NCBI GenBank assembly: GCA_977017575.1
Contig: CDRNVI010000002.1
Span: 496,001-560,000, forward strand
Direction: 5' to 3'
Length of the DNA: 64,000 nucleotides
Source: Paramoeba atlantica
Lineage: Eukaryota > Protista > Discosea
Shown piece after piece: positions 4,101 through 51,223 of the stretch. Within the stretch, counting starts at the first letter, position 1; every line of letters starts with the position of its first letter. The position numbers and the translations under genes were made by a program. The notes below the pieces were generated by a model that was not told the origin of the DNA, made no database searches, and saw only the letters and a list, made by a program, of their open reading frames with translations.

Positions 4101-4243
4101 ATTTTTGCGCCTTTCTGCAGCCGATACTAGAGACCCTTGCCGGGGAGTTTCCGGAAGTCAACGTCCACGCTTACGTCGACGACGTTAATCTTGTATTAAA
4201 TGACGCAGTTCATTTTTTTTCATTCAGACCTTTGTTTTTTTAG
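1064..4243 (+). mobile_element. CRE-like (family A) non-LTR retrotransposon ORF, 3'-truncated just after the RT YVDD; likely start ATG 1157
   Basis: MGVVTRSQSKETG start, Pro-rich region, LHPQ, GGVRPVAIGE, SIDLKNAFN, GVRQGSTLS, AYVDDV; runs into the satellite. Confidence 0.9.
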
Positions 4244-14253: not shown

Positions 14254-15610
14254 AAATTGTTGTCAAAATGCGTTAACGTCCGACAAAGATATCAAATGCG
14301 GGTGCACCATCCCGATGCTTCGGAGGCATTGACAGAACGTTTTGATAAAGAGGTGGAAGACGTTCTACAATCCTGGTTCGGATCACTCACAAAGGAGCAA
14401 ATAACGCAAATCAGGCTACCGGTGAAGAAAGGCGGGTTAGGTTTAACAGCGTGCCTTCCAACGAGACATGCCGCTTTTGAATCTTCATGGTTTTCGGTTT
14501 TTGAGCGCCCAAAAAATCTTTCAGCTCGGACTGAACAACGTGAAGTAAACGCAAGGGACAGCGCCCACAGCGACAAGGACAAAAACGTGCCATTCGACGA
14601 ACACACAGTAGCGGCAAAACTACATACGCAGGCGTGGGAATCTTTAACATCATCGACAGCGAATAGTGCCTCCATCCTGAAAGCGGTAAGTTACACGGGT
14701 AATGCAGAATGGGTTATGTCCAATGCAAAATTTGTGCCCTCGCATTTGTTCTCGCTTGCAATGATGCCGAGATTGGGTATTGCTCATCCGAGTCTACCTA
14801 AGCAATTGCTCTGCCCTGGTTGCAAAATGCTACTAGAATCGCAAACAATTTTAACACACATCCCCGGGTGTTCGAAGTGCCCAGGCTTAAACGCAACTAC
14901 AAAACATAATTCGCTAGTCAATTTTCTTTACGAGCTCTGTTTGAAGGCAGGCATTCCATGCGAAAAAGAACCGCGTAATTTCTCGACATATGCGTGCACG
15001 CAGTGTAACCAGAAAGTGGACTCCGATTACCGGCGGACGCATGAAAAGGTATGCGGTGGTCGTTCTTTTCGAAGATCAGGACCTGACCTTGTCGTTTTTT
15101 GGAATACAGGGGAAATTTTTTATGATTTCACCGTAATTCATGAATTAGCGCCATCGAACCTAGGTACAAACTGTGCAAAGCTGTTTCGTGATGCCATCAA
15201 ACGAAGGCATGACACTTACGTCCGACCCGGCACAATTCCTGAGGACATGTTCAGATGCATTCCAATGCTGTCAGGGGGGCGCTTCACCACAACACGAAGT
15301 CCCTTCTGAGTGCTCTAGCAGATGCGTGCTGTCTCCCCCGGAAGCAAGTACACCTCGAATTTCAGCTCCACCTGCAAGAGTTAAATGGGGCCGTTGTGCA
15401 TTCACAGCTGAGGTCTTTTCTGGAGAAGGATAAGGGTGCCGCAGAGTTGGGAATTTAGAGTTGGAGATCCATGGTCAAAAGAGAATCCGAACTTCTAATC
15501 GATATTAGAAGCTAAGTCAGACTGCATAATTTACAAAAAGGAAAACATATGATCTACTCAGTGGGTATTAAACATATTATTATAAGAGTTTTCCAAGCGC
15601 AAGAAAATAC

Positions 15611-15792
15611 TTAACAAAAGAAAGGGTCTTAACAAAAGAAAGGGTCTTAACAAAAGAAAGGGTCTTAACAAAAGAAAGGGTCTTAACAAAAGAAAGGGTC
15701 TTAACAAAAGAAAGGGTCTTAACAAAAGAAAGGGTCTTAACAAAAGAAAGGGTCTTAACAAAAGAAAGGGTCTTAACAAAAGAAAGGGTCTT
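15611..15792 (+). repeat. 18-nt tandem array (AACAAAAGAAAGGGTCTT)x10
   Basis: Directly visible; reverse complement AAGACCCTTTCTTTTGTT resembles the main satellite. Confidence 0.95.
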
Positions 15793-15838
15793 AACAAAAG
15801 ACTTTCATGCAAGCAATGCCAGCCACACGCAAGAAGAC

Positions 15839-15874
15839 CTTTAACGATAAAGATACAGTTTCTGTACCTTGTTG
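15839..15874 (+). other. Spliced-leader exon copy 22 nt upstream of a CRE ATG
   Basis: Same 36-mer; ATG at 15897. Confidence 0.85.
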
Positions 15875-15896
15875 TTTTTTTTATCTCCTTACCTTT

Positions 15897-18036
15897 ATGG
15901 GCGTGACTACTCGCGCCAAGGCAAAAGAATCGGGGGAAACCCCAATGATTTTGCCCCTTCCAGCTCGGCGGAGGAAGAAAGCACCCCCAGCGTCACCGTC
16001 CACACTCTCGGTCGCCCCTGCCCCCGCCCCCGTGTTAACACCAGAGAAGGTTTCTACAAGCATTGCCGACGCACAGTCAACGCGAATCAAGTCACCGGGT
16101 GTGGAATTCCAGGGAAGCAAGTTGTCCTCGCAGCAAGCGCCGTCCACACCACATTCTACGCCTTCCCCGCCGAGGGCCCCAAGGCCGAGCATGCATACAC
16201 TATCTCGGAGAGCGCGAGTGAAGGCGCACTCGTCTCGAATGTCGACTAGTCCCTCGCCGATATTAAACCAAATGCAAAGGGTCGGAGCGCACATGGAAAA
16301 AAAAGTCGGAGCGCACAGTATATCGGTCACAACACTTTCATACGCTAAGGCACTTTCAAGCTCGCCCGCTAGATCGCCACGCACAGCTAGAGCAGAGGAG
16401 ACAGAGGAACCAATCGACGACATAGTTCTGCGCCCGTTGAATCCGACGGCACGGATACTCTCCGACGAAGAACTGTTCCACCAAAGGAAAGAACGCAAAC
16501 AAGCTAGATGGGAATATCACGAAAAACTACGCAAAGAGAGGATAGCGAAGAATTCAGCTGCAAAGGCCATCGTTGCGCAGAGCGCTACTGAGCCACCCGT
16601 CCCATCTACTCCTCCTTTGATCCCTCCGCGGCTTCCTCCGCCACTTCCCTCGCCAACTCCAGCGATCAAATCCACGGTTACAATACCGGCTAAATTGTTT
16701 TCCAAGGATCTTCTGTCAAACATTTTTTGTCGCCGCGCAAAAAAACACCCGGAAAGTGATACGACCGCGATACTGACCGCGATCAGCCAGGTGGAAACAC
16801 CCAATACGTCAAAGGTCAACGGGATGGAGCCCCACACTCCCATGACGGGCAAGGATGACTCGTGCGAGATCGAAGAGAACCAACTGGTAAGGGAAGATCC
16901 CGCGATACACGCAGCCTCGTCAGAAACTGATCTCATAGAAACACCCCATAGAAACGCTCATCTGATAAATTCTAGCTCGCCAACGAGAACTCAGGAAATA
17001 TTCCATGACTTCACCTCGCCACCGCCAACGATTCCTTTCGACGATCGCAGCCTCGTTAAAGAGCTTATAACAAACGTATCCCCTTCGTATGATTTTCCGC
17101 TATCATCAGAAACAATTTTGAAACACGCGAAATCGGCGAAAACGGGCGAAGAGGTCGTTGTGGCTTGGAGTTTCGACCGTCAAAACAAACTTAACATTTC
17201 ATCCGGGAAGGTCTTAGGGAAGAAAGGAAGAGGAGGTGCGGCAAAAATAGCTGTGGAATATCTCGGACTTTATGGTCACCGCACCGGGGAGAGCCTTACC
17301 GGCCAACTACCCCCACATAACAACGTCCGTATCTACAAAATTATCTGGAAGAGCGGAAAGAATGTCGAAGAAGAGCTACATAACACAGATCAGCTTAATA
17401 CTACTTCTACTACGGAACAGGATCTCGATTTCGAGCCGCTGCCCACCATGCGTACCATACCTGCCGAATATATTCCCGGAGAAGTGATGATTTTTAGAGA
17501 CATACTTCGAGATTATCCCGACAGCAATTACGAGTATCGCAATAGAATATGGCACCGTTTGATGTCTGCTACGAAACATTCCTTAGCCACAATCCGAGAA
17601 ACTGCAGGCAAGAAGCGGCGGCGGAAGCCGCATCCCCATGAGGTGTCCCAGTGTTCACCTGCAGAGGAAAACCTCGAAAAGGCAGATATACGTGCGGCAA
17701 AAAAAGCTATCCGTCTTGCTTTGGAGGGTTGCACCTCCAAAGCAACAAAGGTTCTGGACATAGAGGTAAGAAAAGGTCGATTATCCGACGCTGAAACTCT
17801 TGCAAAGTTAGAGGCTCTTCACCCACAATTGCCGTGCAGTTTCCAACTCCCCACCGATGCACCCGCTATCGCATGTGTCACATCCGTTGAATTGCGAGAA
17901 GCAGGCAGACGTCTAGCAAAGGGGGCTGCTCCAGGTCCTTCTGGCATGACGGACGGTATCCTACGCATTCTTCTCGATGACGAGACCTGTTGCTCATGCC
18001 TCTGCCACATGATGAGGGATTTGGTAAATGGAAATT
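15897..18036 (+). mobile_element. CRE-like (A) 5' portion, truncated in early RT
   Basis: MGVTTRAKAKESG, VAWSFDRQ domain, LHPQ, GAAPGPSG. Confidence 0.85.
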
Positions 18037-18288
18037 ATAAGTATACGTTTAGAAATTTAGGATGATTGATATAATGGCCCTTCGGGGCACATAATATTTA
18101 TATTATGAGATATGATTTGTTTGTTTTGTTTATATAAGTGTACGTTTAGAAATTTAGGATGATTGATATAATGGCCCTTCGGGGCACATAATATTTATAT
18201 TATGAGATATGATTTGTTTGTTTTGTTTAGAGATTTCATTTATTTAGTTTGGTATAGTGACACTCCTTCTCTAACCTTTTTATTGCGG
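18037..18288 (+). repeat. About 250-bp repeat with internal duplication and GCCC-TTCG-GGGC hairpin; identical copy at 21636-21887
   Basis: Identity of the two copies; related to the reverse complement of 10906-11113. Confidence 0.85.
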
Positions 18289-18498
18289 ACGCGTACTACA
18301 AGGCAGTTGCAGAAGAAAAGCTACGGAACATGACGGTATCTAAACAATCGACGAATCGCCCGGCCTTTCTCTGCTACCGCTGCCACAAACCATTTCCGAG
18401 CGAACTGCCCGTTAAATCAATCGTCTACTCGCTTGACCCCGGGTTTTCGCGGAGGGGTGACGAGCGGCACTTCGAGTGCAAAGAGGAGTCACTAGGTA

Positions 18499-19647
18499 GT
18501 GCTCCCCACCCCTTACATCGCTCGTGCCTGTCCGCTGAAAAAGCGGCGGGTGATTTGTCCAGGTCTATCATTCAGCTCATATTTGCACTCTGCAGGGAAG
18601 GTGCATGCCTTTGTGGCATGTCACGGAACGGGACTGCAGAAGCCACAGCATCGGGTGGCGGAAGTAAGGACGTACTCAAGGGCGGGTCAGGCCAAACGAT
18701 CTCTAGAAGTATATCCCGCCGGAAACAAAATCAGGAAACTGGACGTGCAGTCTGCCAAGGACAAGCTAACATGCACAATTTTGAATCTACCAAGTACGAG
18801 CCCGCTAGCACACCAAATGAGAACCCCGATAAATCCCATGTGGACGAATGCTACTTGGCTCTCAAGGGCACGACTGTGGGGAAGGCTCGAACTTTTTTGT
18901 CGGGAAAGAGGGGTACCACCAGATCCAATACACGCCGTTTTGTTCCTTCAGCAAATGGATCTGGCACCTGCGACACTGTTGAGCTACACTTGCAATCTTC
19001 AAACCGTATTTCAGCTGAGTCAAACCGATCCTACCCCTCTCAAAATGTTTGCAAAAGCTCTACAGGCAAGAGGCGCTCTCGAACCAACGCGTCAGATGGA
19101 GCCAATCACTCCGTGGCAACTACGCCGGCTAAGGACAAAATTATCGTTAAGCGAAGGGATCGCCGCGTTGATCTGTTGGAAGGCCGCAGCCAGATGGACA
19201 GAAGTCGCAGAACTAACCCTCGAAAGATTCGTGCGGAATCAACCGAACGAAGTCATAGTCTATTGGGGACGGAACACCAAATCGACTCGTCTCAACCCGT
19301 ACCGCTTATCGATGTGCACAGCCATACAAGGGGAAGGAACTCTAGAGATTGCGGAATACGTCCGGTTTATGAGGAAGGGTCAGCAGGTGACAAGCACAAC
19401 GGTTCGGGAAATGGACGTGAAAATGAAGAAAATTCTGGGCCCCGGCTACGGGACACACTCCCTGAAGCGGGGCGCGATAACGTATCTCTTCAACGAGGTG
19501 GCGCTCGGACGCGTCGCTCTCTCAGACGTGCAAAACATAGCCAAACATCAATGCATCAACTCCCTATTACGATACAACGGGAACCTGATAACTACGGAAA
19601 AGGCGCTCGGTACGCAGCGAGCTTCGGTTCTCCTACCAACCCTATAA
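18499..19647 (+). CDS. Tyrosine recombinase
   Basis: WKAAARW, TK, THSLKRG, AKHQ, LLRY. Confidence 0.88.
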   Translation: MLPTPYIARACPLKKRRVICPGLSFSSYLHSAGKVHAFVACHGTGLQKPQHRVAEVRTYSRAGQAKRSLEVYPAGNKIRKLDVQSAKDKLTCTILNLPSTSPLAHQMRTPINPMWTNATWLSRARLWGRLELFCRERGVPPDPIHAVLFLQQMDLAPATLLSYTCNLQTVFQLSQTDPTPLKMFAKALQARGALEPTRQMEPITPWQLRRLRTKLSLSEGIAALICWKAAARWTEVAELTLERFVRNQPNEVIVYWGRNTKSTRLNPYRLSMCTAIQGEGTLEIAEYVRFMRKGQQVTSTTVREMDVKMKKILGPGYGTHSLKRGAITYLFNEVALGRVALSDVQNIAKHQCINSLLRYNGNLITTEKALGTQRASVLLPTL

Positions 19648-20253
19648 CTCAAGAGGATGTCAACCTTTGTTTCGATCAAATACCGCACGTTAGGCGATAC
19701 AGTGTTATTTGCGCGCGGCGCACTTCCCGTCTTGCACGTCCCGAAGACATGAACCTCCCCCTACACGTTAAGGCTGGAATACCCGTAATGGACGTGCAAG
19801 GTGAAGACTTGGATGTCCCCTGGTGCGCTTCACCGCCTGGAAACCGTGATGAGACACTTATTTGACACGCGACTTGCAGCGCAGACCGAACCAGCAATCA
19901 AAGGTAATCTTTCGGAAGCTGATGTCGTTGGTTTGCTTGACGCTGGAGTGATTGAAACAGTCGAACAGAAAGAACTCCATCAGCATCCGACTTTACAATA
20001 CGTTATTCCTTTTACCGTAGTTGAATCCGATGAGGAGGGGAACGCCCGGCGCCGATTCATATCCTGGACCAAGGACGACAATATCAGATTAAAGGACTAT
20101 AAGCCCGACGTTCCTTTATTGCACCCTTCTTGGTATCTGCATAAGGCTGAGGAAGAAGCAGGCGTTAAGCGCGACTTACGTTGCGGGTTCTACTAAATCG
20201 GAGTTCCGCGCGCGGCACGTGCCAAATTTCGTTTTCGTGACCAAGATGGAGTC

Positions 20254-21240
20254 TTGCACCAGATGAAAGTTATGCCCATGGGGCACCGATGCGCCCCGGA
20301 AATTATGCACAAACTGACAGCAGCTATCGCGTGCGACTCCGCTGTATACAAGCCCACACTGGGCTCCTGTATTGGCTCCGTGGATATTTACATAGACGGT
20401 ATTCGATTTGCCGGAACCCGTGAAGAATGCATCAAATTTGTTAAATTTGTTGACGGACGGTGTGCTCAAGTCGGTGGCTTATTTAAGGAGACCGGATCCG
20501 ACCCTTCCAAAGAATATGTGTTCAATGGAGTCCTGTACAATCATGAAACCCACAAGGTCAGCCTGGGACCTAAGGTTTTACAAAAAATATCGCGCGATCG
20601 CTATCGTAACATAACGTTTTCTCAACTGGAGACGGCGGTGGGGCGCCTCCTCTACGCGGCAGCGGTCTTGGGACATATCATTCCTGAGTATCATTTTCCT
20701 TTAAAGATTGTTCGACGACGGATCAATGAGCTCAATAGAAATCCCAAACTGGCGGAATATCCTGTTCCGCTTCCGACAGCAACTCGTTCTATCCTGGCGG
20801 ACTGGAGGAATATCATTTTACGGAACGAACCAATCGCACCGCCACCACACCCGGATGTCGTTCCTCATAGGCATAGTCTTTACACGGACGCGTCCGCTAA
20901 AGGATGGGGGGCAGTTCTGTACCGGGACGATGGTCAAGTGATCATTGTGGGGGACTCGTGGGAACCGGAATTTAAATATGAAGTTAATCATGCGGAGGCT
21001 ATGGCAGTTCGACTGGCATTTGAAAAACTGGGCCACCACTTTCAAAAGGGGACTTGTGTGGACCTCTTTATAGATAATACGTCGTGCAAAGCTGCCCTTA
21101 ATCGTAAAGTTGCAAAATCAGATAGCATTGCGGTGGAGCTCAAACATATACTCAAAAAGAATCAGAATCTTGGCGTATGCATTATGGCTCGCTACATAAA
21201 ATCTGCCGATAACCCCGCGGACCCGATTAGCCGGTTATGA
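20254..21240 (+). CDS. RT C-terminal part plus DIRS-type RNase H
   Basis: YIDGIRF, YTDAS, HAEAMAV, IDNT, NPAD. Confidence 0.85.
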   Translation: MHQMKVMPMGHRCAPEIMHKLTAAIACDSAVYKPTLGSCIGSVDIYIDGIRFAGTREECIKFVKFVDGRCAQVGGLFKETGSDPSKEYVFNGVLYNHETHKVSLGPKVLQKISRDRYRNITFSQLETAVGRLLYAAAVLGHIIPEYHFPLKIVRRRINELNRNPKLAEYPVPLPTATRSILADWRNIILRNEPIAPPPHPDVVPHRHSLYTDASAKGWGAVLYRDDGQVIIVGDSWEPEFKYEVNHAEAMAVRLAFEKLGHHFQKGTCVDLFIDNTSCKAALNRKVAKSDSIAVELKHILKKNQNLGVCIMARYIKSADNPADPISRL

Positions 21241-21635
21241 AAGTATTCAAATCAGAAATAATGTAGTACTCAAAAAAAAAAAATACTATATATGTAGGCT
21301 ATATATGTAGGTGTTTCAGTAGGTGGCCGCCACCATTTGCTGAAAACACATGCGCTCGGGTGGTAGTATTACGTGCGAGCGGGCTGGTTCGCGGAGTTGG
21401 CGGACGGGATGCCCGTTCGTAAGTAAAGGAGTTTGTTGTGGATTTGTTTCAAATACTGTAAGTTTGATTGAAATGGCCAGGTACCTTAATTTCTTTTCAT
21501 GGATAGGTGGTGAGGATACTAAAGCAGTTGAATTCTTTGAATTGCTTTATGAAGAAAGATATTACATGAATTAGGAATTGGTTTCATTTTATTTATTCTT
21601 GTTCATTATGTGTGAGAAAGAAGACGCTGATTTCT

Positions 21636-21887
21636 ATAAGTATACGTTTAGAAATTTAGGATGATTGATATAATGGCCCTTCGGGGCACATAATATTTAT
21701 ATTATGAGATATGATTTGTTTGTTTTGTTTATATAAGTGTACGTTTAGAAATTTAGGATGATTGATATAATGGCCCTTCGGGGCACATAATATTTATATT
21801 ATGAGATATGATTTGTTTGTTTTGTTTAGAGATTTCATTTATTTAGTTTGGTATAGTGACACTCCTTCTCTAACCTTTTTATTGCGC
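21636..21887 (+). repeat. Second copy of the 250-bp repeat, flanked by a 240-bp direct duplication (21392-21632 / 21909-22152)
   Basis: Direct comparison. Confidence 0.85.
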
Positions 21888-22152
21888 CCGCCCACCAACC
21901 CCCAACCACTTCGCGGAGTTGGCGGACGGGATGCCCGTTCGTAAGTAAAGGAGTTTGTTGTGGATTTGTTTCAAATACTGTAAGTTTGATTGAAATGGCC
22001 AGGTACCTTAATTTCTTTTCATGGATAGGTGGTGAGGATACTAAAGCAGTTGAATTCTTTGAATTGCTTTATGAAGAAAGATATTACATGAATTAGGAAT
22101 TGGTTTCATTTTATTTATTCTTTTTCATTATGTGTGAGAAAGAAGACGCTGA

Positions 22153-22903
22153 TTTCCTGTCCAAAGATATCATGCACCGAATTAAACGAGCCAGGCTCCT
22201 AGCGCTTCCGAAACCGGACAATGGTGTCAGACCGATTGCAATGGGTGAGGTAATCTTGAAACTCGCGGAAATACTTCTTCTTCAGCGCTATGAAAAGTCT
22301 TTACCCCCACTGTTCGCGCCATACCAATACGGGGTAATGATGAAGAGCGGTTGCGAAAAAGTAATACACGAATTAACTGACTTACATCGCTTAGGGCATG
22401 CGATTCTTTCGGTAGACCTCCGTAACGCATTTAACTCGCCGTCCCGCGACGACATATCAAGATGTGTTTTCGGTTTTTCCACACTGAGACCTTTCAGAAG
22501 GATGTTCACAGCTGAGTACGCAGATCCATCCGAGCTTCTTTTCTACGGCGCAGATGGGAAATTTGCAGGAGTGGTGCAAAGTTCCTCTGGCGTGCGTCAA
22601 GGCTCCCCTCTCTTGACGCTCTACTTTTGCGCTTTGATGCAACCAATACTCGAGACGCTGGCAGAAGAATTTCCTGGAATCAAAATCTTTGCCTTCATTG
22701 ATGACATCAACTTGGCCTCAGCAAACAGTACCCTCCTGGCGAAAGCCTTCGACCGGTTACGTGCACTCCTGACGGCGAACAGCTTAGAAGTTGCGCCCAC
22801 GAAATGTGTCTGGTTCGGAGGGAAGAATAAGATACAGCTTCCTGATTTACTACACGATCAAGGCATAAGATGTGAGTTTGAAATCATAAAAATTCTTTCA
22901 TAG
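22153..22903 (+). pseudogene. CRE-like (A) RT fragment
   Basis: GVRPIAMGE, SVDLRNAFN, GVRQGSPL, AFIDDI. Confidence 0.88.
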
Positions 22904-30339: not shown

Positions 30340-32420
30340 TGAACAGATAGCCGAGGCCAGACGCAGCCGGCGACGTCCACTGAAAGAAAACCTTGTGTTT
30401 CGGTTGCCGGTCACCAGAACATATCTGGCGCAATTGTCCCAAGCGCTTTAATCAGGATTTTCGCTCGGGGGTGGCTGGCCCTGCCGCAGGCAGCAAGAGT
30501 TTATGACTAAACCCCACCCAAACGGCCAGTACTATAATTACATTCAAACGAAAACAAACAAGCCTTTTTACGCAAGCCCCGAAGCGGAGGAGAGTGGAAT
30601 GCAATTTGGTTGTGAAGGATGTTCAGAACTTAAGCGGGAGGTGCGTGCAATCCGAGAGTATTTACGGCGGAACTTTGAGTCTACAGCAGGCGTGTCCAGC
30701 ACGCTTCAAATTGGTGAAATTGTTAATGGGGGTGTCCACACTGACACCGGAAATACGAAACGCATTGGATGCCATGGGAGAGATGTGGAGCACAACAACG
30801 TGGCAAGCGAGGGCTCGCTTGTGGGAAAGACTGACAATGTTTTGTCAGTGGAGGGGAATAGAGGTCACCCCAATTCACGCGGTCGCATTTATCGCAAGTT
30901 TGCCAATTCGAATCCAAGCAAAGTTAACGTACGCACGCAGCCTTGCATCAATTCTCAACCTGGCAGGGCAAGTGGTGAATCCTCTGCGCTTCTACGTAAA
31001 ATCATTGATGGCCGAGGGGGCGACGGAGCCGCTACGCCAGATGACCCCATTGACTCTGACCGATCTAAATCAACTGTGGCTCCATCTACCGGACAGCGAA
31101 AGACATACCTTGCTACTTTGTTGGAAGGCAGCAAGTCGGTGGTCAGAGACGGCAGTGTTGACCCGAGACAAGTTTCACGAGATATCGCCTACCAGGATAG
31201 TGATTTGGTGGGGGCGCCACACAAAAACGTCTCGCTTCAATCCTTACCGCCCGTCAATGTATACGGTAGTGGAAGGTCCGGGAACGAGCCGGCTGGCGAA
31301 CTATATTTCCAGACTTGGGGGGTACCAGCCAATGTCTCGAACAACGGTATCCGAAGCGGATCGCCAAATAAGGCGCATTTTGGGGGAAGGATTCGGGACG
31401 CACTCTGCCAAGAGGGGGGCGATAACTCAGTTGTTCGCCGAGGTCGCAAAGGGGGGTACGAGCCTCGAGGAAGTACAGCGGTTAGCGAAGCATCAGTCGC
31501 TGGAGTCACTCCTAAGATACAATGCAGACCCCGTTACGACAGCGCTAGCGCTGGGTACGCAGAACGCGACAAGCCGGTTAAACATAATGTAGACGCTGAT
31601 TTAGTTTTTCGCAAGTTTTTGGAGGACATTCCTCACGAGAAAGTTCGGCATACGATCACACGTACACGACGCACTTCGAAAGTAGCGCTCCCAAAAGATT
31701 TTTCCATCCCATTGCATGTGAGAAAAGGTATTCCACGCATTGAAGTGCAAGCCCTCAGGAATATGATGAATGAGACTGCGGGAGCTCGATTCGATGAGAC
31801 GTGGAATACGTTGTTATCTTTACCAGGGGTGGCATCTCGGGTTCCCACATATCGATCTTTCTTGCCGGAGGGAGATGTAAAGGAGTTGGTCGACGCGGGT
31901 TTCGTTTCGCGTGTGGATGCAGAACAGGAGAGTAGTCGCCCCACGATGGATTGGGTAATCCCTTTCACTGTTGTTGAACCGGCCGATGATGGCTCCGAGA
32001 GAAGACGTTTTATTGCATGGACACAGGAGGATAATGAGCGGATTAAGGAGAGTTACGTGCCATATGTTCCTGTGAGACACGCAGCTTTCTATCTACACCG
32101 CGCGAAGGAACAGAGTGCGGTGAAGCGTGATCTTGCGTGCGGATTTTGGCAGGTCGCAATTCCGTTATCATACCGTCAAAAAATTCGTTTCGTGAATAAA
32201 ATGGGGGACCTGTATGAGATGACGGTGATGCCGATGGGCCACCGGTGTGCACCGGAGCTGATGCACGCATTAACTGCAACGCTGGCTGGAGATAGAGAAT
32301 ATTGTGAGAACAAGATGGCGTTTTTTCATGGAGGCCTCGATACTTATATCGATGGAATTCGATTTGCAGGGAATGACAAGATCACAAACGACTTTGCGCG
32401 ATTCGTGGACGATAGGATAC
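30340..32420 (+). mobile_element. YR retrotransposon family 2 (gag end with CCHC knuckle, YR, RT truncated after YIDG)
   Basis: CFGCRSPEHIWRNC near 30395-30438; RT KRDLACGFWQ, PMGHRCAPE, YIDG. Confidence 0.88.
30594..31592 (+). CDS. Tyrosine recombinase
   Basis: WKAASRW, THSAKRG, AKHQ, LLRY. Confidence 0.88.
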   Translation: MECNLVVKDVQNLSGRCVQSESIYGGTLSLQQACPARFKLVKLLMGVSTLTPEIRNALDAMGEMWSTTTWQARARLWERLTMFCQWRGIEVTPIHAVAFIASLPIRIQAKLTYARSLASILNLAGQVVNPLRFYVKSLMAEGATEPLRQMTPLTLTDLNQLWLHLPDSERHTLLLCWKAASRWSETAVLTRDKFHEISPTRIVIWWGRHTKTSRFNPYRPSMYTVVEGPGTSRLANYISRLGGYQPMSRTTVSEADRQIRRILGEGFGTHSAKRGAITQLFAEVAKGGTSLEEVQRLAKHQSLESLLRYNADPVTTALALGTQNATSRLNIM

Positions 32421-32424
32421 AACA

Positions 32425-33033
32425 TTGCCGCAGCCGAGCTCACCACCAAGTCAATCTGACAAAATTATGGCAAATAAACCCTCCTTCTATGATACCCTTG
32501 CGGCGCACTTCCCTTCACGGTTTCCAACGAGAGCCGCACGTAACCGTCGTCCGCTCCATTCTCCGCCGCTTCTGAACTCCTCCGCCCCCTCAGCTCTACC
32601 GCGCCCTATGCCACCCCCGCTCGCCTCACCACAGCTAATCCGACTGAGCCCCTCTCCCCCAAAAGGTGCTTCAACGGAGACGCCTCCGCCGCCTAAAGGA
32701 TTCTCGCACCGCAAGGATCACGAGATGGGCACGCCACAAAGAACAATACCAGTTGCGGTTTCACGAAAAGATTCAGAATTTCCACCATCGATCTCGTCGA
32801 CAAACGTTTCGCCAAACGTCGCATCAGAATCACCAAACATCAGGTCTCAGAAAACCATGAAAATTACAATTTCAAAGTCAAACATTCGGAGGCAAACGTT
32901 CAACGATTTGTGGACACGCATGCAGAAAGAAAAACGAGAAGCTCAGCGAAAGAACGCCTCGGTAGCACCGCGCATAGTCCAATCTTCTCCTATTAGCAAA
33001 ACTCCTCCAGAAACGCATCCCTTTGCACAGTAG
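32425..33033 (+). pseudogene. Pro-rich N-terminal fragment, probably CRE family A
   Basis: Composition and RRQTFNDLWTRMQKE resemble the CRE N-termini. Confidence 0.45.
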
Positions 33034-36009: not shown

Positions 36010-37711
36010 CGCTACCCCCCATTGTATGGGGGTAGTTCTAACTAAGCTTACGCGTCTTTGTAAGCTAAATCTTATAATTCTATATATTTAATATTTGACC
36101 TACGATAGTGCTTTGCTCATTTGAGAACACAGCACAGTGCCGTTTAACTCCTGGAGGTGCATTATGAAATCTTGCACAACGATATCGCGATCACGCCCGC
36201 TAGCATCGGCCAGAGATTTCAGGAGAGCCAGGCCACTTTTGTTCATTGCTCCTCCGGCGAGTATTGATACGCATGTAAATTTTTCATGAGGTATTAGATC
36301 CGAGTTAACATACGTGTCGACTTTGCGTTTTTCGGCTTCCTGCATTAGCTGATTGCTCCGTTTAACGAGATTCGTCTTGGATATTTCATTTATGATAGTG
36401 AGGTCATAGAATATCTCACCGAACGCCCAGTAAATTGCTAAGTCTGGCCCGCTGCGATGGAATGATGCGGTTCCACACTTTTTCTGATGTTCATGTTTGC
36501 GCTGTTCATTCACCGATTCATTACATTTCAGGCATCGATAAGTGGTGAATTGTCTCGGTTCCCGCTCGCATGGGACTCCGGTCTGAAGACAGAGGTCGTA
36601 AATATGACGAACGAGAGCATGATGTCGCGTTGTCGCATTTGCGCCTGTGCATTTAACGCAACCGAGCAAGTGTGCTAGAAAGTGTTTTGATTCGAGAATC
36701 ATTTTGCATCCAGGGCATATGATTTTGTCCGGCATACTCTTGTGCGCAAGACCAAGTCGTGCCATCACCATTAGAGAGAATTGAGATGATGGAATATATC
36801 TCGTTTTTCCTTGCAACCAATCGTGATTACCCTTTTCACTGCACGCCTTTACCAAAGGTGCCAACTCCTCGTTTTTCTTTGTCAGCTCTTGATACGTCTT
36901 CTGATTGAGCGTAGCCTCCGTTGCGGGGCCATCATTTACTGATTCGCTGTTTGGGGAGGAGTGGCGGAGTGGCAAGAACTCAAAGTTTGAAGCACATGGT
37001 GCTCAGACGGCGAGTTCAAACCCGCTCATCGCAATATTCCCGGCGGCCTCACTCTAAGAGGCTGGGCTGATAACCGACTAGGCCCAGTACTCGGAGGACC
37101 GTCCCGGACCCTCCCCTCAGGGAACCAGCTCCCTTACCCGGCTTACACCTCTTGGGTAAGCCGTGTTGACGTACAGTTCGTCGACGCAGCGTGTTGGCAA
37201 CAGCACGTTGGTGCCGCCTTGGACAAGCGGAAACTGGTAGAGGACGTCGGCCTCGGAACTTCCAAATCTGTCTGTGAAGGGTCTGGCTTGCCAGTGACCA
37301 TCCGGAGCAATCCGGAATGATTTGGATTTTTTTTTTTTTTTTTGGATTCGCTGTCCTGCGCTATACCTTCGTCGCACGTTAATCGAGCTGATTTTGGTTT
37401 ACATTGCTCAAGAGAAACGCGTTTAGAAGAGTTGTACGCGGACGTACGAGAGTCAGTAGATGATGGCAGGCCGAGCCCACCTTTCTTCAGCGGCAACCGG
37501 CACCAAGCGATGTGTTTATCTGACATTTTGCCAAGCCATGTGTTCAACACCGCTTCAACATCGCTGTCGAATTTTTTGCATAGTTTTTCCGATGCTATTG
37601 GTGTGTGTACCCGGGTGTGGTACCTATGTCTAATGTTTACGCTTTTCGATAGTAGAAGTAGTGATATGTTGTTTAAACCCATGCGCTTGAGACGTCGGAA
37701 TATGGCTTCGT
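36010..37711 (-). mobile_element. 5'-truncated CRE-like (A) copy with 3'UTR hairpin and polyA, interrupted by a SINE-like insert
   Basis: FRRLKRMG..., GGLGL, CPGC, RSGPDL, FYDLTI; A-tail at about 35990-36008. Confidence 0.88.
36951..37344 (+). mobile_element. tRNA-headed SINE-like structured insert, 394 bp, 10-bp TSD, T17 tail
   Basis: A box TGGCGGAGTGG 36962-36972; B box GAGTTCAAACCC 37012-37023; TSD GATTCGCTGT at 36941-36950 and 37345-37354. Confidence 0.75.
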
Positions 37712-38719
37712 GCATTGGCATTACATCAGGAATGTCATGTGGAATTTTGTTCACGAACAGTTCAGCGAGTCTGAAGCACTGAGTATCATGATCATAGCTT
37801 ACACCCAAAAAGTCATACTTTGGGCCACAATATGACTCTTCTTCCTTGAAGGTAGCGTTTAATTTTTTTGCCCGAGTTTCCAACCAATTTTCATATAATT
37901 TGCATTGATGTTGAGCTCCAGTGTAACGTATTCCGTCGATATAGATATCTATATTGCCATTCTTCAGTGAACTTTCTGTCATGATAGAGTCTTTCGTATA
38001 TTTCGGATCACCTGCTACCACTCCTGTTAAAATTTGCTGTATTTCAGGGGCGCAACAATGGCCCATCGGCATGCGAGTTAGTTGATATGTAGCGTCTCCA
38101 TACCGAAAACGATAGAAACACTTAGAATGTTGTGGTAACGCAACCTGATAAAAACTTGATTTTAAATCTCTCTTTACTGCACATGGTGAACGAACACTTT
38201 CAGCGTATGATCCCGGTTGATCTATTGGAACGTGGGCTACGTAAGTATTTTGCAAAATAGCGTTTTGATGCTTGGGCCAACATATAAAACGGCGTCTTTT
38301 TACTCCGTTCCTCTCTTCGACCACGGTAGATGGTAATACCTTGCCTTTCGTAGGATTGCTTCGTAACTCTTCATAACTGACACGCTCGATGATGCCATTT
38401 TCAGATAGCTGCTTAATATCTGTATGCGATAAGGATCCGTTGGAGCGAGGTAGAATTCCAATATTATTCAAAATAGGGAAATGTGGCATCGTTATGTTTT
38501 TCCATACGTCTGTAAACCTTGTTCCCACTTCAGGCTTCATATGTTGTATTGCCGTTGAAAGGTCAATTGGTTGCACTTTGGGGGCGTGTAACGGGATGTT
38601 GAATTGTTCTGGAGTAGCCATACTAGATTTCCGAATTGTGCGTGTCCAGATAACTTTTTTCCTAGGCGCAACGTCTTTCTGCTGTGTATCCCAATACGAC
38701 ATTAAATTCTTCTTGCTGT

Positions 38720-39727
38720 TTAAAGGAAACGTGTCACCCATTGTGTTCCTAAGGCGCGTGCCGTCGTTTCCGATCTTCCGGAGTATCGGAGTAGAGTGGT
38801 TACGTTCTTGTGGTTTGCGAGGTTCATTACTTCTTCCAATGTTAGTTTCTTCAGTGCCACTTGTTTCATCAGGGAGTGCACGGCTCCGTGCTTCATCGAA
38901 TGTGAGGAATACCCCGGACCCAGATGCTTTCTGAGAAAACTCGCTACCTTTTGAGTGCTTGCCTGAGAGATTTTTTGATTGGGTTTCAATTTGCGAAGAT
39001 GGGTGTATATCAGATGGGTATACGCACCTTCGATTACCACAAAACAATCTGGGCGAAAAGGTTGCATCTTTGTAGTTTTTGTTTTGTTTCCCATATGTAG
39101 AACAATGCTTGTAGGGTTCAGGTGAATTACATCCTTTCTTTGTAACTTGCAAATATCGCCTATTCGGGAGGCTGTCTTGTACGCCAACAGAACAGCTATG
39201 AACATGTCTGTGGGCATCAGTCGGCTCAACTCGTTTATGTGATATTTGTTTACAGGTTTCGCTTGATGAGTCGGAATAGTGGCTCCCGTGCGTAAAAGAG
39301 TGTTGCAATACATCCTTATAAGTTCGAAATTTTGTCCGGAGGCTTTCAGAAGGGCTTGCAAGTGCTTCCCGTATGTTAGCTTTGTCTGGTTTGTTACTGT
39401 CATTTGATTGAGAAATTCGATTGCTCCATCGCTGCAAAACTGAAATCTTTTCTCTTCCATTCGTCTTAAAAGGCGGGCTCTTGTTTTCCATGTGTTGACA
39501 CTCCACATTTTCCGAAGGCAATTTCTGGTTATTGGCTGGATTATTCCTAAGAAATTCATTACATAATCTTCCTCCCTGATGTCGGAATTCTTCTTTTGTT
39601 GGCAGTTTATCTTGTTCTGACTTGTCACACTCTTTGTTTGGGGCAGATTTACTGATTTTGAATTTTGTTTTGTAATTTTTAGTTCCATCAAATTTTTCGT
39701 TCTGTATTCCCTTTTTGAAAGTATCAT
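38720..39727 (-). CDS. Tyrosine recombinase
   Basis: R...H-x-x-K-H...H...Y motifs. Confidence 0.88.
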   Translation of the reverse strand: MILSKREYRTKNLMELKITKQNSKSVNLPQTKSVTSQNKINCQQKKNSDIREEDYVMNFLGIIQPITRNCLRKMWSVNTWKTRARLLRRMEEKRFQFCSDGAIEFLNQMTVTNQTKLTYGKHLQALLKASGQNFELIRMYCNTLLRTGATIPTHQAKPVNKYHINELSRLMPTDMFIAVLLAYKTASRIGDICKLQRKDVIHLNPTSIVLHMGNKTKTTKMQPFRPDCFVVIEGAYTHLIYTHLRKLKPNQKISQASTQKVASFLRKHLGPGYSSHSMKHGAVHSLMKQVALKKLTLEEVMNLANHKNVTTLLRYSGRSETTARALGTQWVTRFL

Positions 39728-39766
39728 GTTCGACTGACTTTTTGCACGGGGGCAGACTCCTGTGAG

Positions 39767-41059
39767 TCAATTGCTCCGGCCAGTGGACCCCCGTCCGTAG
39801 AAAACCGGGTTTAAGCCCCCCCGATTTACTGCCCTGAAATTCCGTGAATAAGGCCGTTGAATGTCCCTACCATAGTGATTTTTTTGATTAGTTTCGGTTT
39901 GTGAATATGTTGCGGAAACATTCTGTTGTCCTGATCGGTATCCCCGCATTGGCGTGAAACCTCGTCCTCTGCCCCGGTTATAATTTACGCTTGTATTGAT
40001 CAAATTCCCCAAGACGTCATCTGAATTTCGGTGGGCATTATAATGAGATTGCACATAACTAGTATCGGAGCCCTTTAATGACCCCAGTTTAATGCGTAAA
40101 CGATCAAGTGTCAACTGTCCAACTTCAAAATGTTTTTCTGAATCTTCAGCTTCATTCTGGCGATCTGCTGTTGCTCGCATCCATTGTTTTAATAATTCCC
40201 ACAGAAATTTCAATTCTTCATTCAGATAAATTGGCATTTGCAATGCTTCTTTCAGCCGATTTTCCAAAATATCTAGAGAGAACGGTTCACCAGAGTTTAG
40301 TATTCCAGACCAGGTTCGTACTTTCTGCCATTTAAATGAACTCTCTTCGAATTGACCACGAAGTTCGGATCCTGAGATATCTGAAGTTTCCTCATCTTTC
40401 GGAACCTTAGATACGATCTTAATATTGTTGTACATGACACCTTCCTCAGGTAAAGCGTACAGGCCCTGGCCATAGTCGACTTGTAAAAAGGGTTTTCCAT
40501 TTTCATCAATTCCGGGATAGGCTATTCCTTTCCACACTTGCAAAGCACTTGGACCTAATTCTTCATAGTACCACGAAACATCCAGCTCGACGGTGTACTT
40601 GTCTAGAAGAGAAGTAACTTTGCAAATAACTTTTTTCAACTCGTCGGGGCTCATACAATGATTCGGGTTCACTTGTTCGTGGTGGCGCACTTCACTAGTA
40701 CCCGCATCAGAGGTTCCTATGCTTGATCCTTTTTGATTCTGACGGTCGTTCAACCTTTGGGTCACTTCCATCGTCATGGAGCGCAATATCTTCATTTCAT
40801 TCCGTACTTCCGCATCACGTTTTCCAAACTCTTTTTGGAGATTTTCTTGCGCAGTTGAAACTTTCTTTACGTCCGTACGAAATTCGGAAATCTGCTGTAA
40901 TATTATCTGTAAAGTTTGATTAATGTTCGAATCTTCCCCCGTACCCACAGTAACGCTATCTCCACCACAAGGCTGAACCATAACAGGTTCTTCAGAGAGC
41001 GGGCCCGACTCAGGTGCAGCTTGAGACGAATCCGCCAGTTGAGAACGTGTTGAAACCAT
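39767..41059 (-). CDS. Gag-like ORF1 (coiled coil, Tudor-like domain, RG-rich tail)
   Basis: Intact 430-aa ORF directly upstream of YR and RT; pyrimidine tract plus AG upstream of the ATG. Confidence 0.75.
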   Translation of the reverse strand: MVSTRSQLADSSQAAPESGPLSEEPVMVQPCGGDSVTVGTGEDSNINQTLQIILQQISEFRTDVKKVSTAQENLQKEFGKRDAEVRNEMKILRSMTMEVTQRLNDRQNQKGSSIGTSDAGTSEVRHHEQVNPNHCMSPDELKKVICKVTSLLDKYTVELDVSWYYEELGPSALQVWKGIAYPGIDENGKPFLQVDYGQGLYALPEEGVMYNNIKIVSKVPKDEETSDISGSELRGQFEESSFKWQKVRTWSGILNSGEPFSLDILENRLKEALQMPIYLNEELKFLWELLKQWMRATADRQNEAEDSEKHFEVGQLTLDRLRIKLGSLKGSDTSYVQSHYNAHRNSDDVLGNLINTSVNYNRGRGRGFTPMRGYRSGQQNVSATYSQTETNQKNHYGRDIQRPYSRNFRAVNRGGLNPVFYGRGSTGRSN

Positions 41060-41120
41060 AAAATTTTTAAACTATGAGTAGTGAAAAAAGGCCAATCTCA
41101 ATCAATTGAATTTTTAAATT

Positions 41121-47039: not shown

Positions 47040-48351
47040 CGGCGCATACATCGGTGATCCAGATTGTATCAGTCAGAAACTTTGTGACATTCTACAGAAG
47101 CACCAATCAGCATTTCGTAGACTAAAAAAAATGGGGATCAACAATGTGTCCACTCTACTACTATCAAAGTGCGTAAACATCAGACACCGTTACCACATTC
47201 TGGTACATGATCCACAACAAACTCTGGATATGGCCTCTGATTTCGACGCAGAAGTAAATAAAACCCTCAAGGCTTGGCTAGGCAACCTCACGGACCGACA
47301 GATATCTTGGCTACGTCTACCGACGCGCAAGGGTGGACTGGGAGTCACCCCCATCGAACCACTACGTGAATCTTCGTACAGCGCTTCAAAATTTGCTGCT
47401 CTTGAGCATCGAAAACCCTCTTCAGCTCGGGCAACCCAAACGATGAATGCGCCAACTCCGGTTGATGGTGATTCTCGCGACCCCTACATCAATTTCGATG
47501 AGCAAGCTAGTGAAGCAAAATACCACAACAAGGTCCGTCAAGCCTTAATAGAGGAAAAAACACTTGCGCCCATCATCAAACTAGCGTCTCACAAGGGTCA
47601 ATACGCTTGGCTCACATCCAAAGCTCGTCTAGTGCCTAGTTCAGCATTCAAATTATCGATTATGCCGAGATTCGCACTACACCACCCACAAATCCCGGAC
47701 GATGTTCAATGCCCTGGGTGCAAAAGTCTCCTTACGTCATCTACCATACTAAATCATATCCCTGAGTGCGCAAAATGTGCAGGAGTAAATGTGACAACCA
47801 AACACCACGCCTTAGTTCGGTACATCTATGAGCTTTGCTTGAAGAGTGGCCTCACCTGTGAAAAAGAACCTCGGCAATTTTCTTCATTTCAGTGCTCCGG
47901 ATGCCAGAATAGTGTAACCGAGGAAAATCTCACAGAACACCAGCGCAGCTGTCGCGGCAGTGTCCGCAGATCTGGGCCCGACCTTATGATCTACTGGGCA
48001 GACGGTCCGATGTATTATGACCTAACTGTAGTTCACGAGTTTTCAGCAGCTCACATAAACAAAACGCCTCAAAAAATGATGAACGAAGTCATCACGAAGA
48101 AACGCGACCGTTACGTAACTTCTGGGATGATTGCGAATGATCGTTTCATGTGTATCCCTGTCCTTTCGGGTGGAGCGCTACATAAGTATACAAAACGTCT
48201 ATTAACAGCTTTAGCAGATCGTTGCCTTATTTCACGGCAACATATATTAGAAGACTTTGCCCTGTACCTCCAAGAACTGAACGGGAACATAGTTCTGTCG
48301 CAGATGCAAAAATATTTAACTCCCGACAAGGAAGAACAATACACCATATAA
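47040..48351 (+). pseudogene. CRE-like (A) C-terminal fragment; duplicate at about 55457-56769
   Basis: FRRLKKMG, GGLGV, CPGC, RSGPDL, YYDLTVVHE. Confidence 0.88.
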
Positions 48352-48632
48352 GTTCAGACAGTGGACCAAAAGAGATGATCTCCCTCTCGTTTTTAATCAG
48401 ACAGGAAAATGCATGTTTGTTCTGCTATTAAAGCTAGTTTGCAAAAAAAAAAACGAGAACGAAAAACTATACGAAGCCACCAATACTGTGGAAAACAGAG
48501 TGATGCGGAACAAAAAAAAAAGTGGTGGAAAGTTGTATTCTATTCTTTTGAATACTTTATATCCTTAATGTTATGTTATGTTATGTGTTCAGGTTAATAC
48601 AAAAAAAAAGTTTATAATAATACCAAAGTGAA

Positions 48633-49830: not shown

Positions 49831-49869
49831 GTTCGACTGACTTTTTGCACGGGGGCAGACTCCTGTGAG

Positions 49870-51162
49870 TCAATTGCTCCGGCCAGTGGACCCCCGTCCG
49901 TAGAAAACCGGGTTTAAGCCCCCCCGATTTACTGCCCTGAAATTCCGTGAATAAGGCCGTTGAATGTCCCTACCATAGTGATTTTTTTGATTAGTTTCGG
50001 TTTGTGAATATGTTGCGGAAACATTCTGTTGTCCTGATCGGTATCCCCGCATTGGCGTGAAACCTCGTCCTCTGCCCCGGTTATAATTTACGCTTGTATT
50101 GATCAAATCCCCCAAGACGTCATCTGAATTTCGGTGGGCATTATAATGAGATTGCACATAACTAGTATCGGAGCCCTTTAATGACCCCAGTTTAATGCGT
50201 AAACGGTCAAGTGTCAACTGTCCAACTTCAAAATGTTTTTCTGAATCTTCAGCTTCATTCTGGCGATCTGCTGTTGCTCGCATCCATTGTTTTAATAATT
50301 CCCACAGAAATTTCAATTCTTCATTCAGATAAATTGGCATTTGCAATGCTTCTTTCAGCCGATTTTCCAAAATATCTAGAGAGAACGGTTCACCAGAGTT
50401 TAGTATTCCAGACCAGGTTCGTACTTTCTGCCATTTAAATGAACTCTCTTCGAATTGACCACGAAGTTCGGATCCTGAGATATCTGAAGTTTCCTCATCT
50501 TTCGGAACCTTAGATACGATCTTAATATTGTTGTACATGACACCTTCCTCAGGTAAAGCGTACAGGCCCTGGCCATAGTCGACTTGTAAAAAGGGTTTTC
50601 CATTTTCATCAATTCCGGGATAGGCTATTCCTTTCCACACTTGCAAAGCACTTGGACCTAATTCTTCATAGTACCACGAAACATCCAGCTCGACGGTGTA
50701 CTTGTCTAGAAGAGAAGTAACTTTGCAAATAACTTTTTTCAACTCGTCGGGGCTCATACAATGATTCGGGTTCACTTGTTCGTGGTGGCGCACTTCACTA
50801 GTACCCGCATCAGAGGTTCCTATGCTTGATCCTTTTTGATTCTGACGGTCGTTCAACCTTTGGGTCACTTCCATCGTCATGGAGCGCAATATCTTCATTT
50901 CATTCCGTACTTCCTCATCACGTTTTCCAAACTCTTTTTGGAGATTTTCTTGCGCAGTTGAAACTTTCTTTACGTCCGTACGAAATTCGGAAATCTGCTG
51001 TAATATTATCTGTAAAGTTTGATTAATGTTCGAATCTTCCCCCGTACCCACAGTAACGCTATCTCCACCACAAGGCTGAACCATAACAGGTTCTTCAGAG
51101 AGCGGGCCCGACTCAGGTGCAGCTTGAGACGAATCCGCCAGTTGAGAACGTGTTGAAACCAT
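49870..51162 (-). CDS. Gag-like ORF (duplicate)
   Basis: Near-identical to 39767-41059. Confidence 0.75.
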   Translation of the reverse strand: MVSTRSQLADSSQAAPESGPLSEEPVMVQPCGGDSVTVGTGEDSNINQTLQIILQQISEFRTDVKKVSTAQENLQKEFGKRDEEVRNEMKILRSMTMEVTQRLNDRQNQKGSSIGTSDAGTSEVRHHEQVNPNHCMSPDELKKVICKVTSLLDKYTVELDVSWYYEELGPSALQVWKGIAYPGIDENGKPFLQVDYGQGLYALPEEGVMYNNIKIVSKVPKDEETSDISGSELRGQFEESSFKWQKVRTWSGILNSGEPFSLDILENRLKEALQMPIYLNEELKFLWELLKQWMRATADRQNEAEDSEKHFEVGQLTLDRLRIKLGSLKGSDTSYVQSHYNAHRNSDDVLGDLINTSVNYNRGRGRGFTPMRGYRSGQQNVSATYSQTETNQKNHYGRDIQRPYSRNFRAVNRGGLNPVFYGRGSTGRSN

Positions 51163-51223
51163 AAAATTTTTAAACTATGAGTAGTGAAAAAAGGCCAATC
51201 TCAATCAATTGAATTTTTAAATT

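Follow-up and report, generated by a model that had tools for sequence, protein, structure and literature searches.

Frameshifting between gag and pol is textbook knowledge for retroviruses and long terminal repeat (LTR) elements. The gag-pro/pol sites of the mouse mammary tumour virus (MMTV) and simian retrovirus 1 (SRV-1) type have a slippery heptamer of the form X_XXY_YYZ in phase near the end of gag, a spacer of 5-8 nucleotides (nt) and a G/C-rich pseudoknot, and yield a fusion of Gag with reverse transcriptase (RT). Judging from the arrangement and conservation of its parts, a programmed -1 ribosomal frameshift signal of this gag-pol type is very probably present in a different class of elements, the tyrosine recombinase (YR) retrotransposons of Paramoeba atlantica. 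Four copies lie in a 64,000-nt stretch of this genome (hereafter the window; contig CDRNVI010000002.1 of assembly GCA_977017575.1, G000:C2:496001-560000 in our coordinates, the assembly totalling 45.7 Mb), and the cassette at the end of their gag frames recurs across the genome and in distant relatives. Unlike the retroviral and LTR elements, YR elements carry a tyrosine recombinase and neither protease nor integrase; at their sites a shifted ribosome would have to cross an overprinted gene of 350-430 codons before reaching RT, and the loop between the second stem and the 3' arm of the first is long and carries the gag stop.

The closest described element is VIPER of Trypanosoma cruzi, which shares the gene order gag-YR-RT/RNase H (RH), the frames and, in its published copies, the logic of the cassette. 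The Repbase coordinates of VIPER (ORF1 169-1509, YR 1510-2517, RT/RH 1386-4214; Ludwig and Krieger, 2016, PMC5146736) give the same frames as those found here, in that YR follows directly on open reading frame (ORF) 1 without a change of frame, whereas RT/RH lies at -1 and overlaps both the last part of ORF1 and the whole of YR. In the VIPER papers examined, genes that overlap and are served by alternative start sites are described (Ribeiro et al., 2019, PMC6681497; PMC5146736), and VIPER and Ngaro have been said usually to lack ORF overlaps (Piednoel et al., 2011, PMC3266345). DIRS1-like elements are similar in the extensive overlap of pol and YR and differ in gene order and repeats, with no frameshift signal reported (PMC3266345). 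A -1 frameshift cassette in YR retrotransposons, including VIPER of the Chagas parasite, seems to be undescribed. An earlier prediction made from the letters of the window had supposed as much for VIPER/TATE/DIRS-type elements, and no earlier description was found in the literature examined: in PMC6681497, PMC3266345, PMC5146736, a review of T. cruzi retrotransposons and the results of full-text searches, neither frameshifting or readthrough nor a pseudoknot or slippery site is reported for YR elements, and the accessible portion of a 2016 recoding review does not mention recoding in them.

Conservation of the slippery heptamer

The four copies in the window belong to three families whose recombinases are 31-44% identical. 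Their assignment to the VIPER-like type (order DIRS) follows from a Phage_integrase match (E 5e-6), matches to RVT_1 and RT_RNaseH with an RT/RNase H of the LTR-retrotransposon type, catalytic H, R and Y columns that are invariant in an alignment of 15 YRs, and the gene order gag-YR-RT/RH with YR in the gag frame and RT/RH overlapping. A six-frame search of the genome with the family 3 YR gave 121 matches at 31-100% identity; the 50 genomic loci analysed reduce to 25 distinct junction cassettes in at least 12 divergent families (YR identity 31-74%). Intact copies follow a single plan, in which a gag of 320-460 codons ends at one in-frame stop and is followed by a YR frame of 350-430 codons, while the -1 frame opens 17-81 codons ahead of the gag stop and stays open for 850-1120 codons, and the +1 frame closes within a few codons.

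In the window, each family had been predicted to carry a slippery heptamer in gag phase, and a single gag stop followed by a YR ORF in the gag frame with no further stop; the letters bear out both, the heptamer in all four copies (Table 1). Throughout the genome, G_GNU_UUY stands in gag phase at the junction in 25 of 25 distinct cassettes, counting one with G_AUU_UUU. The forms seen are GGGUUUU, GGAUUUU, GGAUUUC, GGUUUUC, GGGUUUC and the single GAUUUUU, located 31-88 nt ahead of the gag stop. Elsewhere in gag the motif occurs in phase at only 2 of 6824 codons (about 0.03%). The heptamer falls within the open -1 window in 24 of the 25 cassettes, the -1 opening being sometimes only 3 nt upstream. 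The exception (L007, G000:C1:93438-97373) has a -1-frame UAG directly after the slip site, where its sibling copies L010, L034 and L038 have a sense codon. Two neighbouring loci depart from the common plan: the rearranged L021 (G000:C4:450348-454208) has CGA in place of the gag UGA in the pseudoknot loop, leaving gag and YR in one uninterrupted frame, and L022 has a fused frame of 617 codons.

Family 1 (G_GGU_UUU) conforms strictly to X_XXY_YYZ, as do G_GGA_AAC and A_AAA_AAC in relatives; families 2 and 3 have near-canonical variants known from viruses. The corresponding heptamers of barley yellow dwarf virus (BYDV), red clover necrotic mosaic virus (RCNMV) and cardioviruses are G_GGU_UUU, G_GAU_UUU and G_GUU_UUU. 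These viruses resemble the present elements in their G_GNU_UUY heptamers with imperfect P-site re-pairing, whereas their stimulators are long-range kissing interactions or a viral protein and the stimulator here would be a local, conserved pseudoknot; the A-site codon of family 3 is, moreover, UUC rather than UUU.

A covarying pseudoknot around the gag stop

Downstream of the heptamer, after a spacer of 4-7 nt, begins a first stem (S1) of 5-8 base pairs (bp), with a G-rich 5' arm (CGGGGGU, GGGUGG, GGGGUG) and a C-rich 3' partner beyond the gag stop. The 5' arm of a second stem (S2, 4-8 bp) starts 0-2 nt past the S1 5' arm and its partner lies 3-9 nt beyond the S1 3' arm, so that the two form a pseudoknot; the loop of 22-74 nt that leads from S2 to the S1 3' arm contains the gag stop and usually a small hairpin. 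Because spacer and loop lengths vary between cassettes by non-multiples of three, the conservation acts at the level of RNA. In most families the best pseudoknot score exceeds that of at least 97.5% of dinucleotide shuffles. A scan of the window against Rfam returned no family at the gathering score.

Compensatory changes between families are found in both stems. Among 21 sequences, five core pairs of S1 are formed in all 21, one position being U-A in 12, G-C in 7, and U-G and C-G in one each. For S2, each of five core pairs is present in 19-21 of the 21, with U-A (13), G-C (4), C-G (2) and A-U (1) at one position and G-C (16) and A-U (4) at another. Between groups the S2 arms differ wholly and yet remain complementary, as in CUGGC(C)/(G)GCCAG, ACGAGCGG/UCGCUCGU, CAAGCAG/CUGCUUG and CGAGUGG/CUACUCG. 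Within the family 3 group alignment 92.9% of cells are paired, against 30-54% when the partner is slid, and among the relatives of family 1 S2 is 97% paired, with three pairs changed on both sides. A different family 1 stem, GUGAC/GUCAC, had been put forward originally; it is not kept in the relatives L045 and L047b, and the conserved pairing is GAGGGGUG/CACCCCUU plus ACGAGCGG/UCGCUCGU. The wider check that had been proposed, of heptamer, phase and stem covariation over the junctions of genomic copies, came out in favour of the cassette, in this genome and, as to its plan, in published VIPER.

An additional hairpin lies directly 3' of the pseudoknot at 18529-18552 of the window and at the homologous sites of L043, L045 and L047. 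Its sequences in family 1 and relatives (CCGCUG-AAAAAG-CGGCGG, CCGUUG...CGGCGG, CCGUUU...AAACGG) differ by pair-preserving changes. Since the YR frame has a conserved basic stretch, K-K/R-R-R-V, that overlaps the hairpin, constraint on RNA and on protein are inseparable here.

An open -1 corridor over the recombinase gene

Of 9479 codons read in the -1 frame across YR, 9 are stops, and these fall in three copies whose pol frame is interrupted; the +1 frame has 802. At the background stop rate of about 5.7%, taken from non-coding frames in gag and in the pol-only parts, about 22 stops would be expected per element, and none is present in any copy with an unbroken pol frame. Substitutions in the YR core follow the YR frame (mismatch 0.59-0.68 at third and 0.16-0.30 at second positions), and the -1 translation is 20-32% identical where YR is 48-70% identical. 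A frame that is free of stops and encodes a poorly conserved protein appears to be kept open as a corridor for ribosomes on their way to RT, and not for its product. In genome copies and relatives the -1 ORFs run for 850-1270 codons to RT/RNase H, as expected of an enzyme-encoding frame entered by a shift. It had been predicted that the -1 frame leads to RT in all three families of the window. It is open across the site in each and reaches RT in family 3; in the family 1 copy it misses the RT frame, and in that of family 2 it ends early.

Relatives and published VIPER copies

At E <= 1e-30, an exhaustive search with a profile built on 15 YRs yielded 294 relatives; word-index protein searches with one YR or with the YR profile returned almost no matches. 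Named relatives come from Diplonema papillatum, Rhynchopus euleeides and Papus ankaliazontas. One further locus (L051) proved to belong to the same organism. The same plan recurs in contigs of six unrelated metagenomes and in a diplonemid-like contig: a single UGA separates gag from an in-frame YR, and the -1 ORF is 1000-1270 codons long. Cassettes of five relatives are given at the end of Table 1; L061, L066 and L071 fit the plan less well and L068 does not fit it. The heptamers of MMTV and SRV-1, A_AAA_AAC or G_GGA_AAC, are found again in relatives.

Published VIPER copies were read by eye from supplement 10 of Ribeiro et al. (2019, PMC6681497). In VIPER of T. cruzi Dm28c a CCHC knuckle is followed by A_AAA_AAC in gag phase and, after a spacer of 6 nt, by a perfect stem of 10 bp, GGGGCUGCCG/CGGCAGCCCC, whose 24-nt loop holds the gag UGA followed immediately by the AUG of the in-frame YR. 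In the Crithidia fasciculata copy an in-phase A_AAA_AAA, within a run of eight A, is followed by a stem with UGA in its apical loop, and in the Bodo saltans copy an in-phase G_GGA_AAC precedes UGA by nine codons, with a hairpin just 3' of the stop.

In D. papillatum (L055/L056, GCA_030068145.1) the YR forms the last part of one long open frame (about 1020-1040 codons) that is overlapped by a 442-codon frame, a layout unlike that of VIPER. A 331-amino-acid (aa) YR of R. euleeides (cluster of P0136) is the third predicted ORF (p3) on one Trinity transcript, which hints that whole-element transcripts exist in this relative.

Probable frameshifting, possible readthrough and alternatives

Taken together, the open corridor, the phased heptamer and the spaced, covarying pseudoknot are strong comparative evidence for -1 frameshifting. 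From these features of sequence we infer the following course, including the slippage, the readthrough and any rates of either. Ribosomes translating gag would meet G_GNU_UUY (in relatives G_GGA_AAC, A_AAA_AAC or A_AAA_AAA) with the G/C-rich S1 beginning 4-7 nt further on, locked by S2 into a pseudoknot with a stop-containing loop of 22-74 nt. A fraction would slip into the -1 frame, cross the 350-430 codons that overprint the recombinase gene and go on to make RT/RNase H as a Gag fusion. For the remainder, translation would end at the one UGA or UAG. Behind this stop, the recombinase ORF would most likely be translated by a minority of ribosomes that read through, giving Gag-YR, a much less certain step.

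Several observations weigh against frameshifting at this site or limit the evidence for it. A number of the heptamers are non-canonical at the P site (G_GAU_UUY, G_GUU_UUC, G_AUU_UUU), frameshift pseudoknots do not usually have so long a loop between S2 and the 3' arm of S1, one family (L019) has no clear S2, and in another (L011 and L013, see below) the -1 frame holds the YR (470 codons) and the -2 frame holds pol (at least 992 codons). Since the arms of the family 3 group hardly vary, the covariation rests on the comparison between groups, in which the pairing register of the 21 sequences was set for each separately. A single MAFFT alignment of all cassettes misaligns the 3' arms; the arms of family 2 were misaligned as well, and its pair count, which understates the pairing, was not used for S1/S3. 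Minimum free energy (MFE) z-scores of nested folds are unremarkable (-0.95, +0.84, -0.85); nested folding, which a pseudoknot lies beyond, recovers S1 in families 1 and 3 and S2 in family 2. In a search of sequencing runs the element was matched only in DNA runs of one study, and a single doubtful RNA run gave no aligned reads.

Weak MFE z-scores would also suit an account without recoding, in which pol is made from internal starts (the alternative start sites of the literature) or a subgenomic mRNA, the heptamer is conserved merely for the Gag peptide that it encodes, x-F-R-G-G, and packaging, dimerisation or cDNA synthesis accounts for the fold. The peptide behind the knuckle is indeed alike between families (GFRGG, DFRSG, VFYGRG), and the family 2 copy has a -1-frame AUG overlapping its gag stop. 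No such AUG is conserved at the junction, however, and the heptamers of relatives (G_GGA_AAC, A_AAA_AAC) encode other residues at the same place. The -1 frame opens ahead of the heptamer, at times by only 3 nt, the distance to S1 is typical of frameshift stimulators and varies out of codon phase, and a stop-free, barely conserved corridor of such length has no purpose unless ribosomes enter upstream of YR; we regard this account as quite unlikely. Still less probable, to the point of being hardly credible, is a shift at the RNA level through slippage of a polymerase on runs of U or A. The eight-A run of C. fasciculata VIPER and the U4-U5 runs of some families would permit it, but slippage sites are not known to be followed by a spaced pseudoknot, and the run in most heptamers is just three U long (GGAUUUC) or three A long (GGGAAAC). 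Runs of three bases are too short for transcriptional slippage as known from potyviruses and bacterial insertion sequences.

A more serious alternative concerns the recombinase, namely that only the frameshift is programmed and YR is made either by termination and reinitiation at an AUG just past the stop or from its own AUG on a spliced-leader mRNA; we consider this possible, at somewhat less than even weight. Ludwig and Krieger (PMC5146736) annotate the YR start right after ORF1. An AUG lies at most two codons past the stop in T. cruzi VIPER, L058 and L061 (UGA-AUG), L060 (UGA-AUU-AUG), L012, L043 and L046, a position in these seven that fits reinitiation and speaks against readthrough, and every intact family of this genome has an AUG within 57 codons of the gag stop. 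The contexts of the stop are not uniformly leaky: UGA-C occurs 11 times, UAG-G nine and UGA-A five, the +4 base being C, A or G by family, with UGA-CUA in family 2 of the window and in L024. A stop-adjacent AUG is nonetheless confined to a minority and absent in most families, the first AUG being anywhere from 1 to 111 codons past the stop; in some copies KRRR-type, YGGTLSLQ and other conserved motifs precede it, and the first 97 codons of the L011/L013 YR frame past the slip site contain no AUG. Neither reinitiation nor a separate mRNA requires an open frame between stop and AUG, yet this stretch is free of stops over 262 codons in 10 independent intact families and over about 155 more in relatives. 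With stops expected at about 5.7% of codons, the 262 open codons are very unlikely unless translated, which favours readthrough to Gag-YR; the downstream ORF is in frame and open from the stop onwards, independently of a start codon.

Production of YR as Gag-YR by readthrough of the gag stop is accordingly no more than evenly weighted, a plausible reading of the open frame. As in readthrough of the murine leukaemia virus (MuLV) type (UAG-G plus a pseudoknot) and at UGA-CUA leaky stops, gag ends in a single UAG-G or UGA-C with the enzyme ORF in frame; unlike there, the stop context is not uniform, the stop lies downstream of a frameshift site and the pseudoknot begins upstream of the stop. With its arms flanking the stop on both sides, the pseudoknot would already be unwound when a ribosome stands on the stop, and since it starts upstream it cannot serve as a classical 3' stimulator of readthrough. 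Two further arguments for readthrough were rejected. The absence of UAA at gag ends says little of leakiness, as just 5 of the 33 remaining stops in these elements are UAA, and the agreement of the YR frame with that of gag carries no independent weight: with pol overlapping, indels other than multiples of three are excluded. Of the double recoding switch originally predicted, then, the -1 frameshift is well grounded in phase, spacer, covarying pseudoknot and corridor, and the readthrough half depends on the stop-free stretch up to the first AUG.

Families with the recombinase in the -1 frame

The variant family of L011 and L013 (G000:C43:8281-12234 and C66:341926-345879) comprises at least four near-identical copies. 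It has G_GUU_UUU in gag phase, and gag ends at a UAG within the pseudoknot loop. The YR ORF contains no AUG until its codon 158. The U5 run would permit A-site re-pairing at -1 and -2. There is a resemblance, and no more, to the -2/-1 site G_GUU_UUU of arterivirus nsp2, in that the heptamer is in gag phase with ORFs open in the -1 (YR) and -2 (pol) frames; unlike in arteriviruses, no trans-acting protein or C-rich motif at arterivirus spacing is known in L011/L013. A copy of TATE from Leishmania braziliensis (PMC6681497, supplement 11, record positions 474-1700), read by eye, has an in-phase A_AAA_AAC that abuts the gag UAA (AAA AAC UAA), and its ORF2, which encodes the YR, runs open through the site in the -1 frame; this points to a shift by -1 that would lead from gag into ORF2. 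Either these elements are one-base derivatives or their recombinase is also delivered by a -1 shift; the latter would support the view that Gag-YR fusions are something the element needs.

As a tentative model, which we hold with less than even confidence, one cassette of roughly 90 nt may thus allow three outcomes for each ribosome: Gag, a -1 shift to Gag-corridor-RT/RNase H, or readthrough to Gag-recombinase. A single mRNA would then set the dose of all proteins of an element that has no protease, with L011/L013 as a sister family and apparently TATE of Leishmania obtaining the recombinase by a -1 shift at the same site.

The copies in the window

Several non-LTR RT ORFs accompany the YR copies, making the window a mosaic of retroelements. 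All three frames are open only in the family 3 copy at 37143-41059 (gag 430 aa, YR 335-348, -1 ORF 875 aa), the junction of which is covered without indels by DNA contigs from other sequencing runs. In the second family 3 copy the pol frame is broken after 367 codons. The family 2 copy is truncated at its 5' end (gag 40 codons) and its -1 ORF ends early, at 690 codons. The family 1 copy is degenerate, with gag reduced to 53 codons, a frame break within the CCHC knuckle near 18390, and RT in a separate frame that contains a stop; it is nested inside a non-LTR element.

That non-LTR RT ORF (motifs AAPGPSG ... FIDD) is found in two halves, 15807-18065 and 22100-22903, around the inserted family 1 element (about 18066-22099), and directly upstream of it is a tandem repeat of 18-nt units (15558-15812; minus-strand reading LLLRPF). 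Family 3 elements, together with an adjoining 930-aa RT ORF (41121-43913 and 51224-54016), form a repeat, 37143-43913 and 47246-54016, with an offset of 10,103 bp.

Table 1. Cassettes and reading frames of the YR elements in the window (positions within the window), with the cassettes of five relatives
Feature	Position	Strand	Remarks
Family 1 slippery heptamer	18441..18447	+	G_GGU_UUU; gag phase (codon GGT from 18442); degenerate copy
Family 1 pseudoknot 5' arms	18452..18467	+	S1 GAGGGGUG 18452-18459; S2 ACGAGCGG 18460-18467
Family 1 gag stop	18493..18495	+	UAG, within the long pseudoknot loop
Family 1 pseudoknot 3' arms	18507..18525	+	S1 CACCCCUU 18507-18514; loop ACA; S2 UCGCUCGU 18518-18525
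Family 1 YR frame	18496..19647	+	continues gag frame; first AUG 107 codons past stop
Family 1 -1 corridor over YR	18330..19865	+	not joined to RT frame (19801-21240) in this copy
Family 2 gag CCHC zinc knuckle	30396..30437	+	C-FG-C-RSPE-H-IWRN-C, read by hand
Family 2 slippery heptamer	30455..30461	+	G_GAU_UUU; -1 frame opens at 30452
Family 2 pseudoknot 5' arms and inner hairpin	30469..30493	+	S1 GGGUGG 30469-30474; S2 CUGGCC 30475-30480; hairpin CUGCC-GCA-GGCAG 30481-30493
Family 2 gag stop	30504..30506	+	UGA, then CUA; -1-frame AUG overlaps stop (AUGA)
Family 2 pseudoknot 3' arms	30514..30529	+	S1 CCACCC 30514-30519; loop AAAC; S2 GGCCAG 30524-30529
Family 2 -1 frame (corridor and RT)	30452..32575	+	shortened in this copy
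Family 2 YR frame after gag stop	30507..31592	+	first AUG at codon 73, downstream of conserved KRRR and YGGTLSLQ motifs
Family 3 gag ORF	39767..41059	-	430 aa from ATG; C-terminus RG-rich; last 100 aa without knuckle
Family 3 slippery heptamer	39800..39806	-	G_GUU_UUC; gag phase; -1 frame open from 39866
Family 3 pseudoknot	39733..39794	-	S1 ACGGGGGU 39794-39787 with GCCCCCGU 39753-39746
Family 3 pseudoknot S2		-	ACUGGC 39784-39779 with GUCAGU 39738-39733
Family 3 inner hairpin		-	GACUC-ACAG-GAGUC 39768-39755; holds UGA stop 39769-39767
Family 3 -1 frame	37143..39866	-	crosses YR as a corridor and continues into RT; 875-aa ORF, matching RVT_1 at aa 525-588
Family 3 YR frame after gag stop	38720..39766	-	348 codons; first AUG codon 13; Phage_integrase match
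Second family 3 cassette	49836..49909	-	identical; heptamer 49909-49903; stop 49872-49870
Relative L058			heptamer G_GGA_AAC; S1 GCGGGGC/GCCCCGC; S2 GCGCAA/UUGUGC
Relative L060			heptamer G_GGA_AAC; S1 GCGGGG/CCCCGC; S2 CAAGGGG/UCCCUUG
Relative L062			heptamer G_GGA_AAC; S1 AGGGGGG/CCCCCCU; S2 ACCGGC/GCCGGU
Relative L065			heptamer A_AAA_AAC; S1 CGGGGG/CCCCCG; S2 GCGGC/GUCGC
Relative L069			heptamer G_GGA_AAG; S1 AGGC/GCCU; S2 GGGGGCG/CGCCCCC

Implications

A frameshift signal at the end of gag would explain why the overlap of RT/RH with YR exists in these elements and why it stays open, and it predicts enzymes that are fused to Gag. The cassette can be used as a marker that separates intact from decayed copies, and it offers studies of recoding on kinetoplastid ribosomes a natural, phylogenetically validated candidate for a frameshift pseudoknot. 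If the gag stop is also read through, these retrotransposons would be a rare case of two recoding events within one structured cassette.

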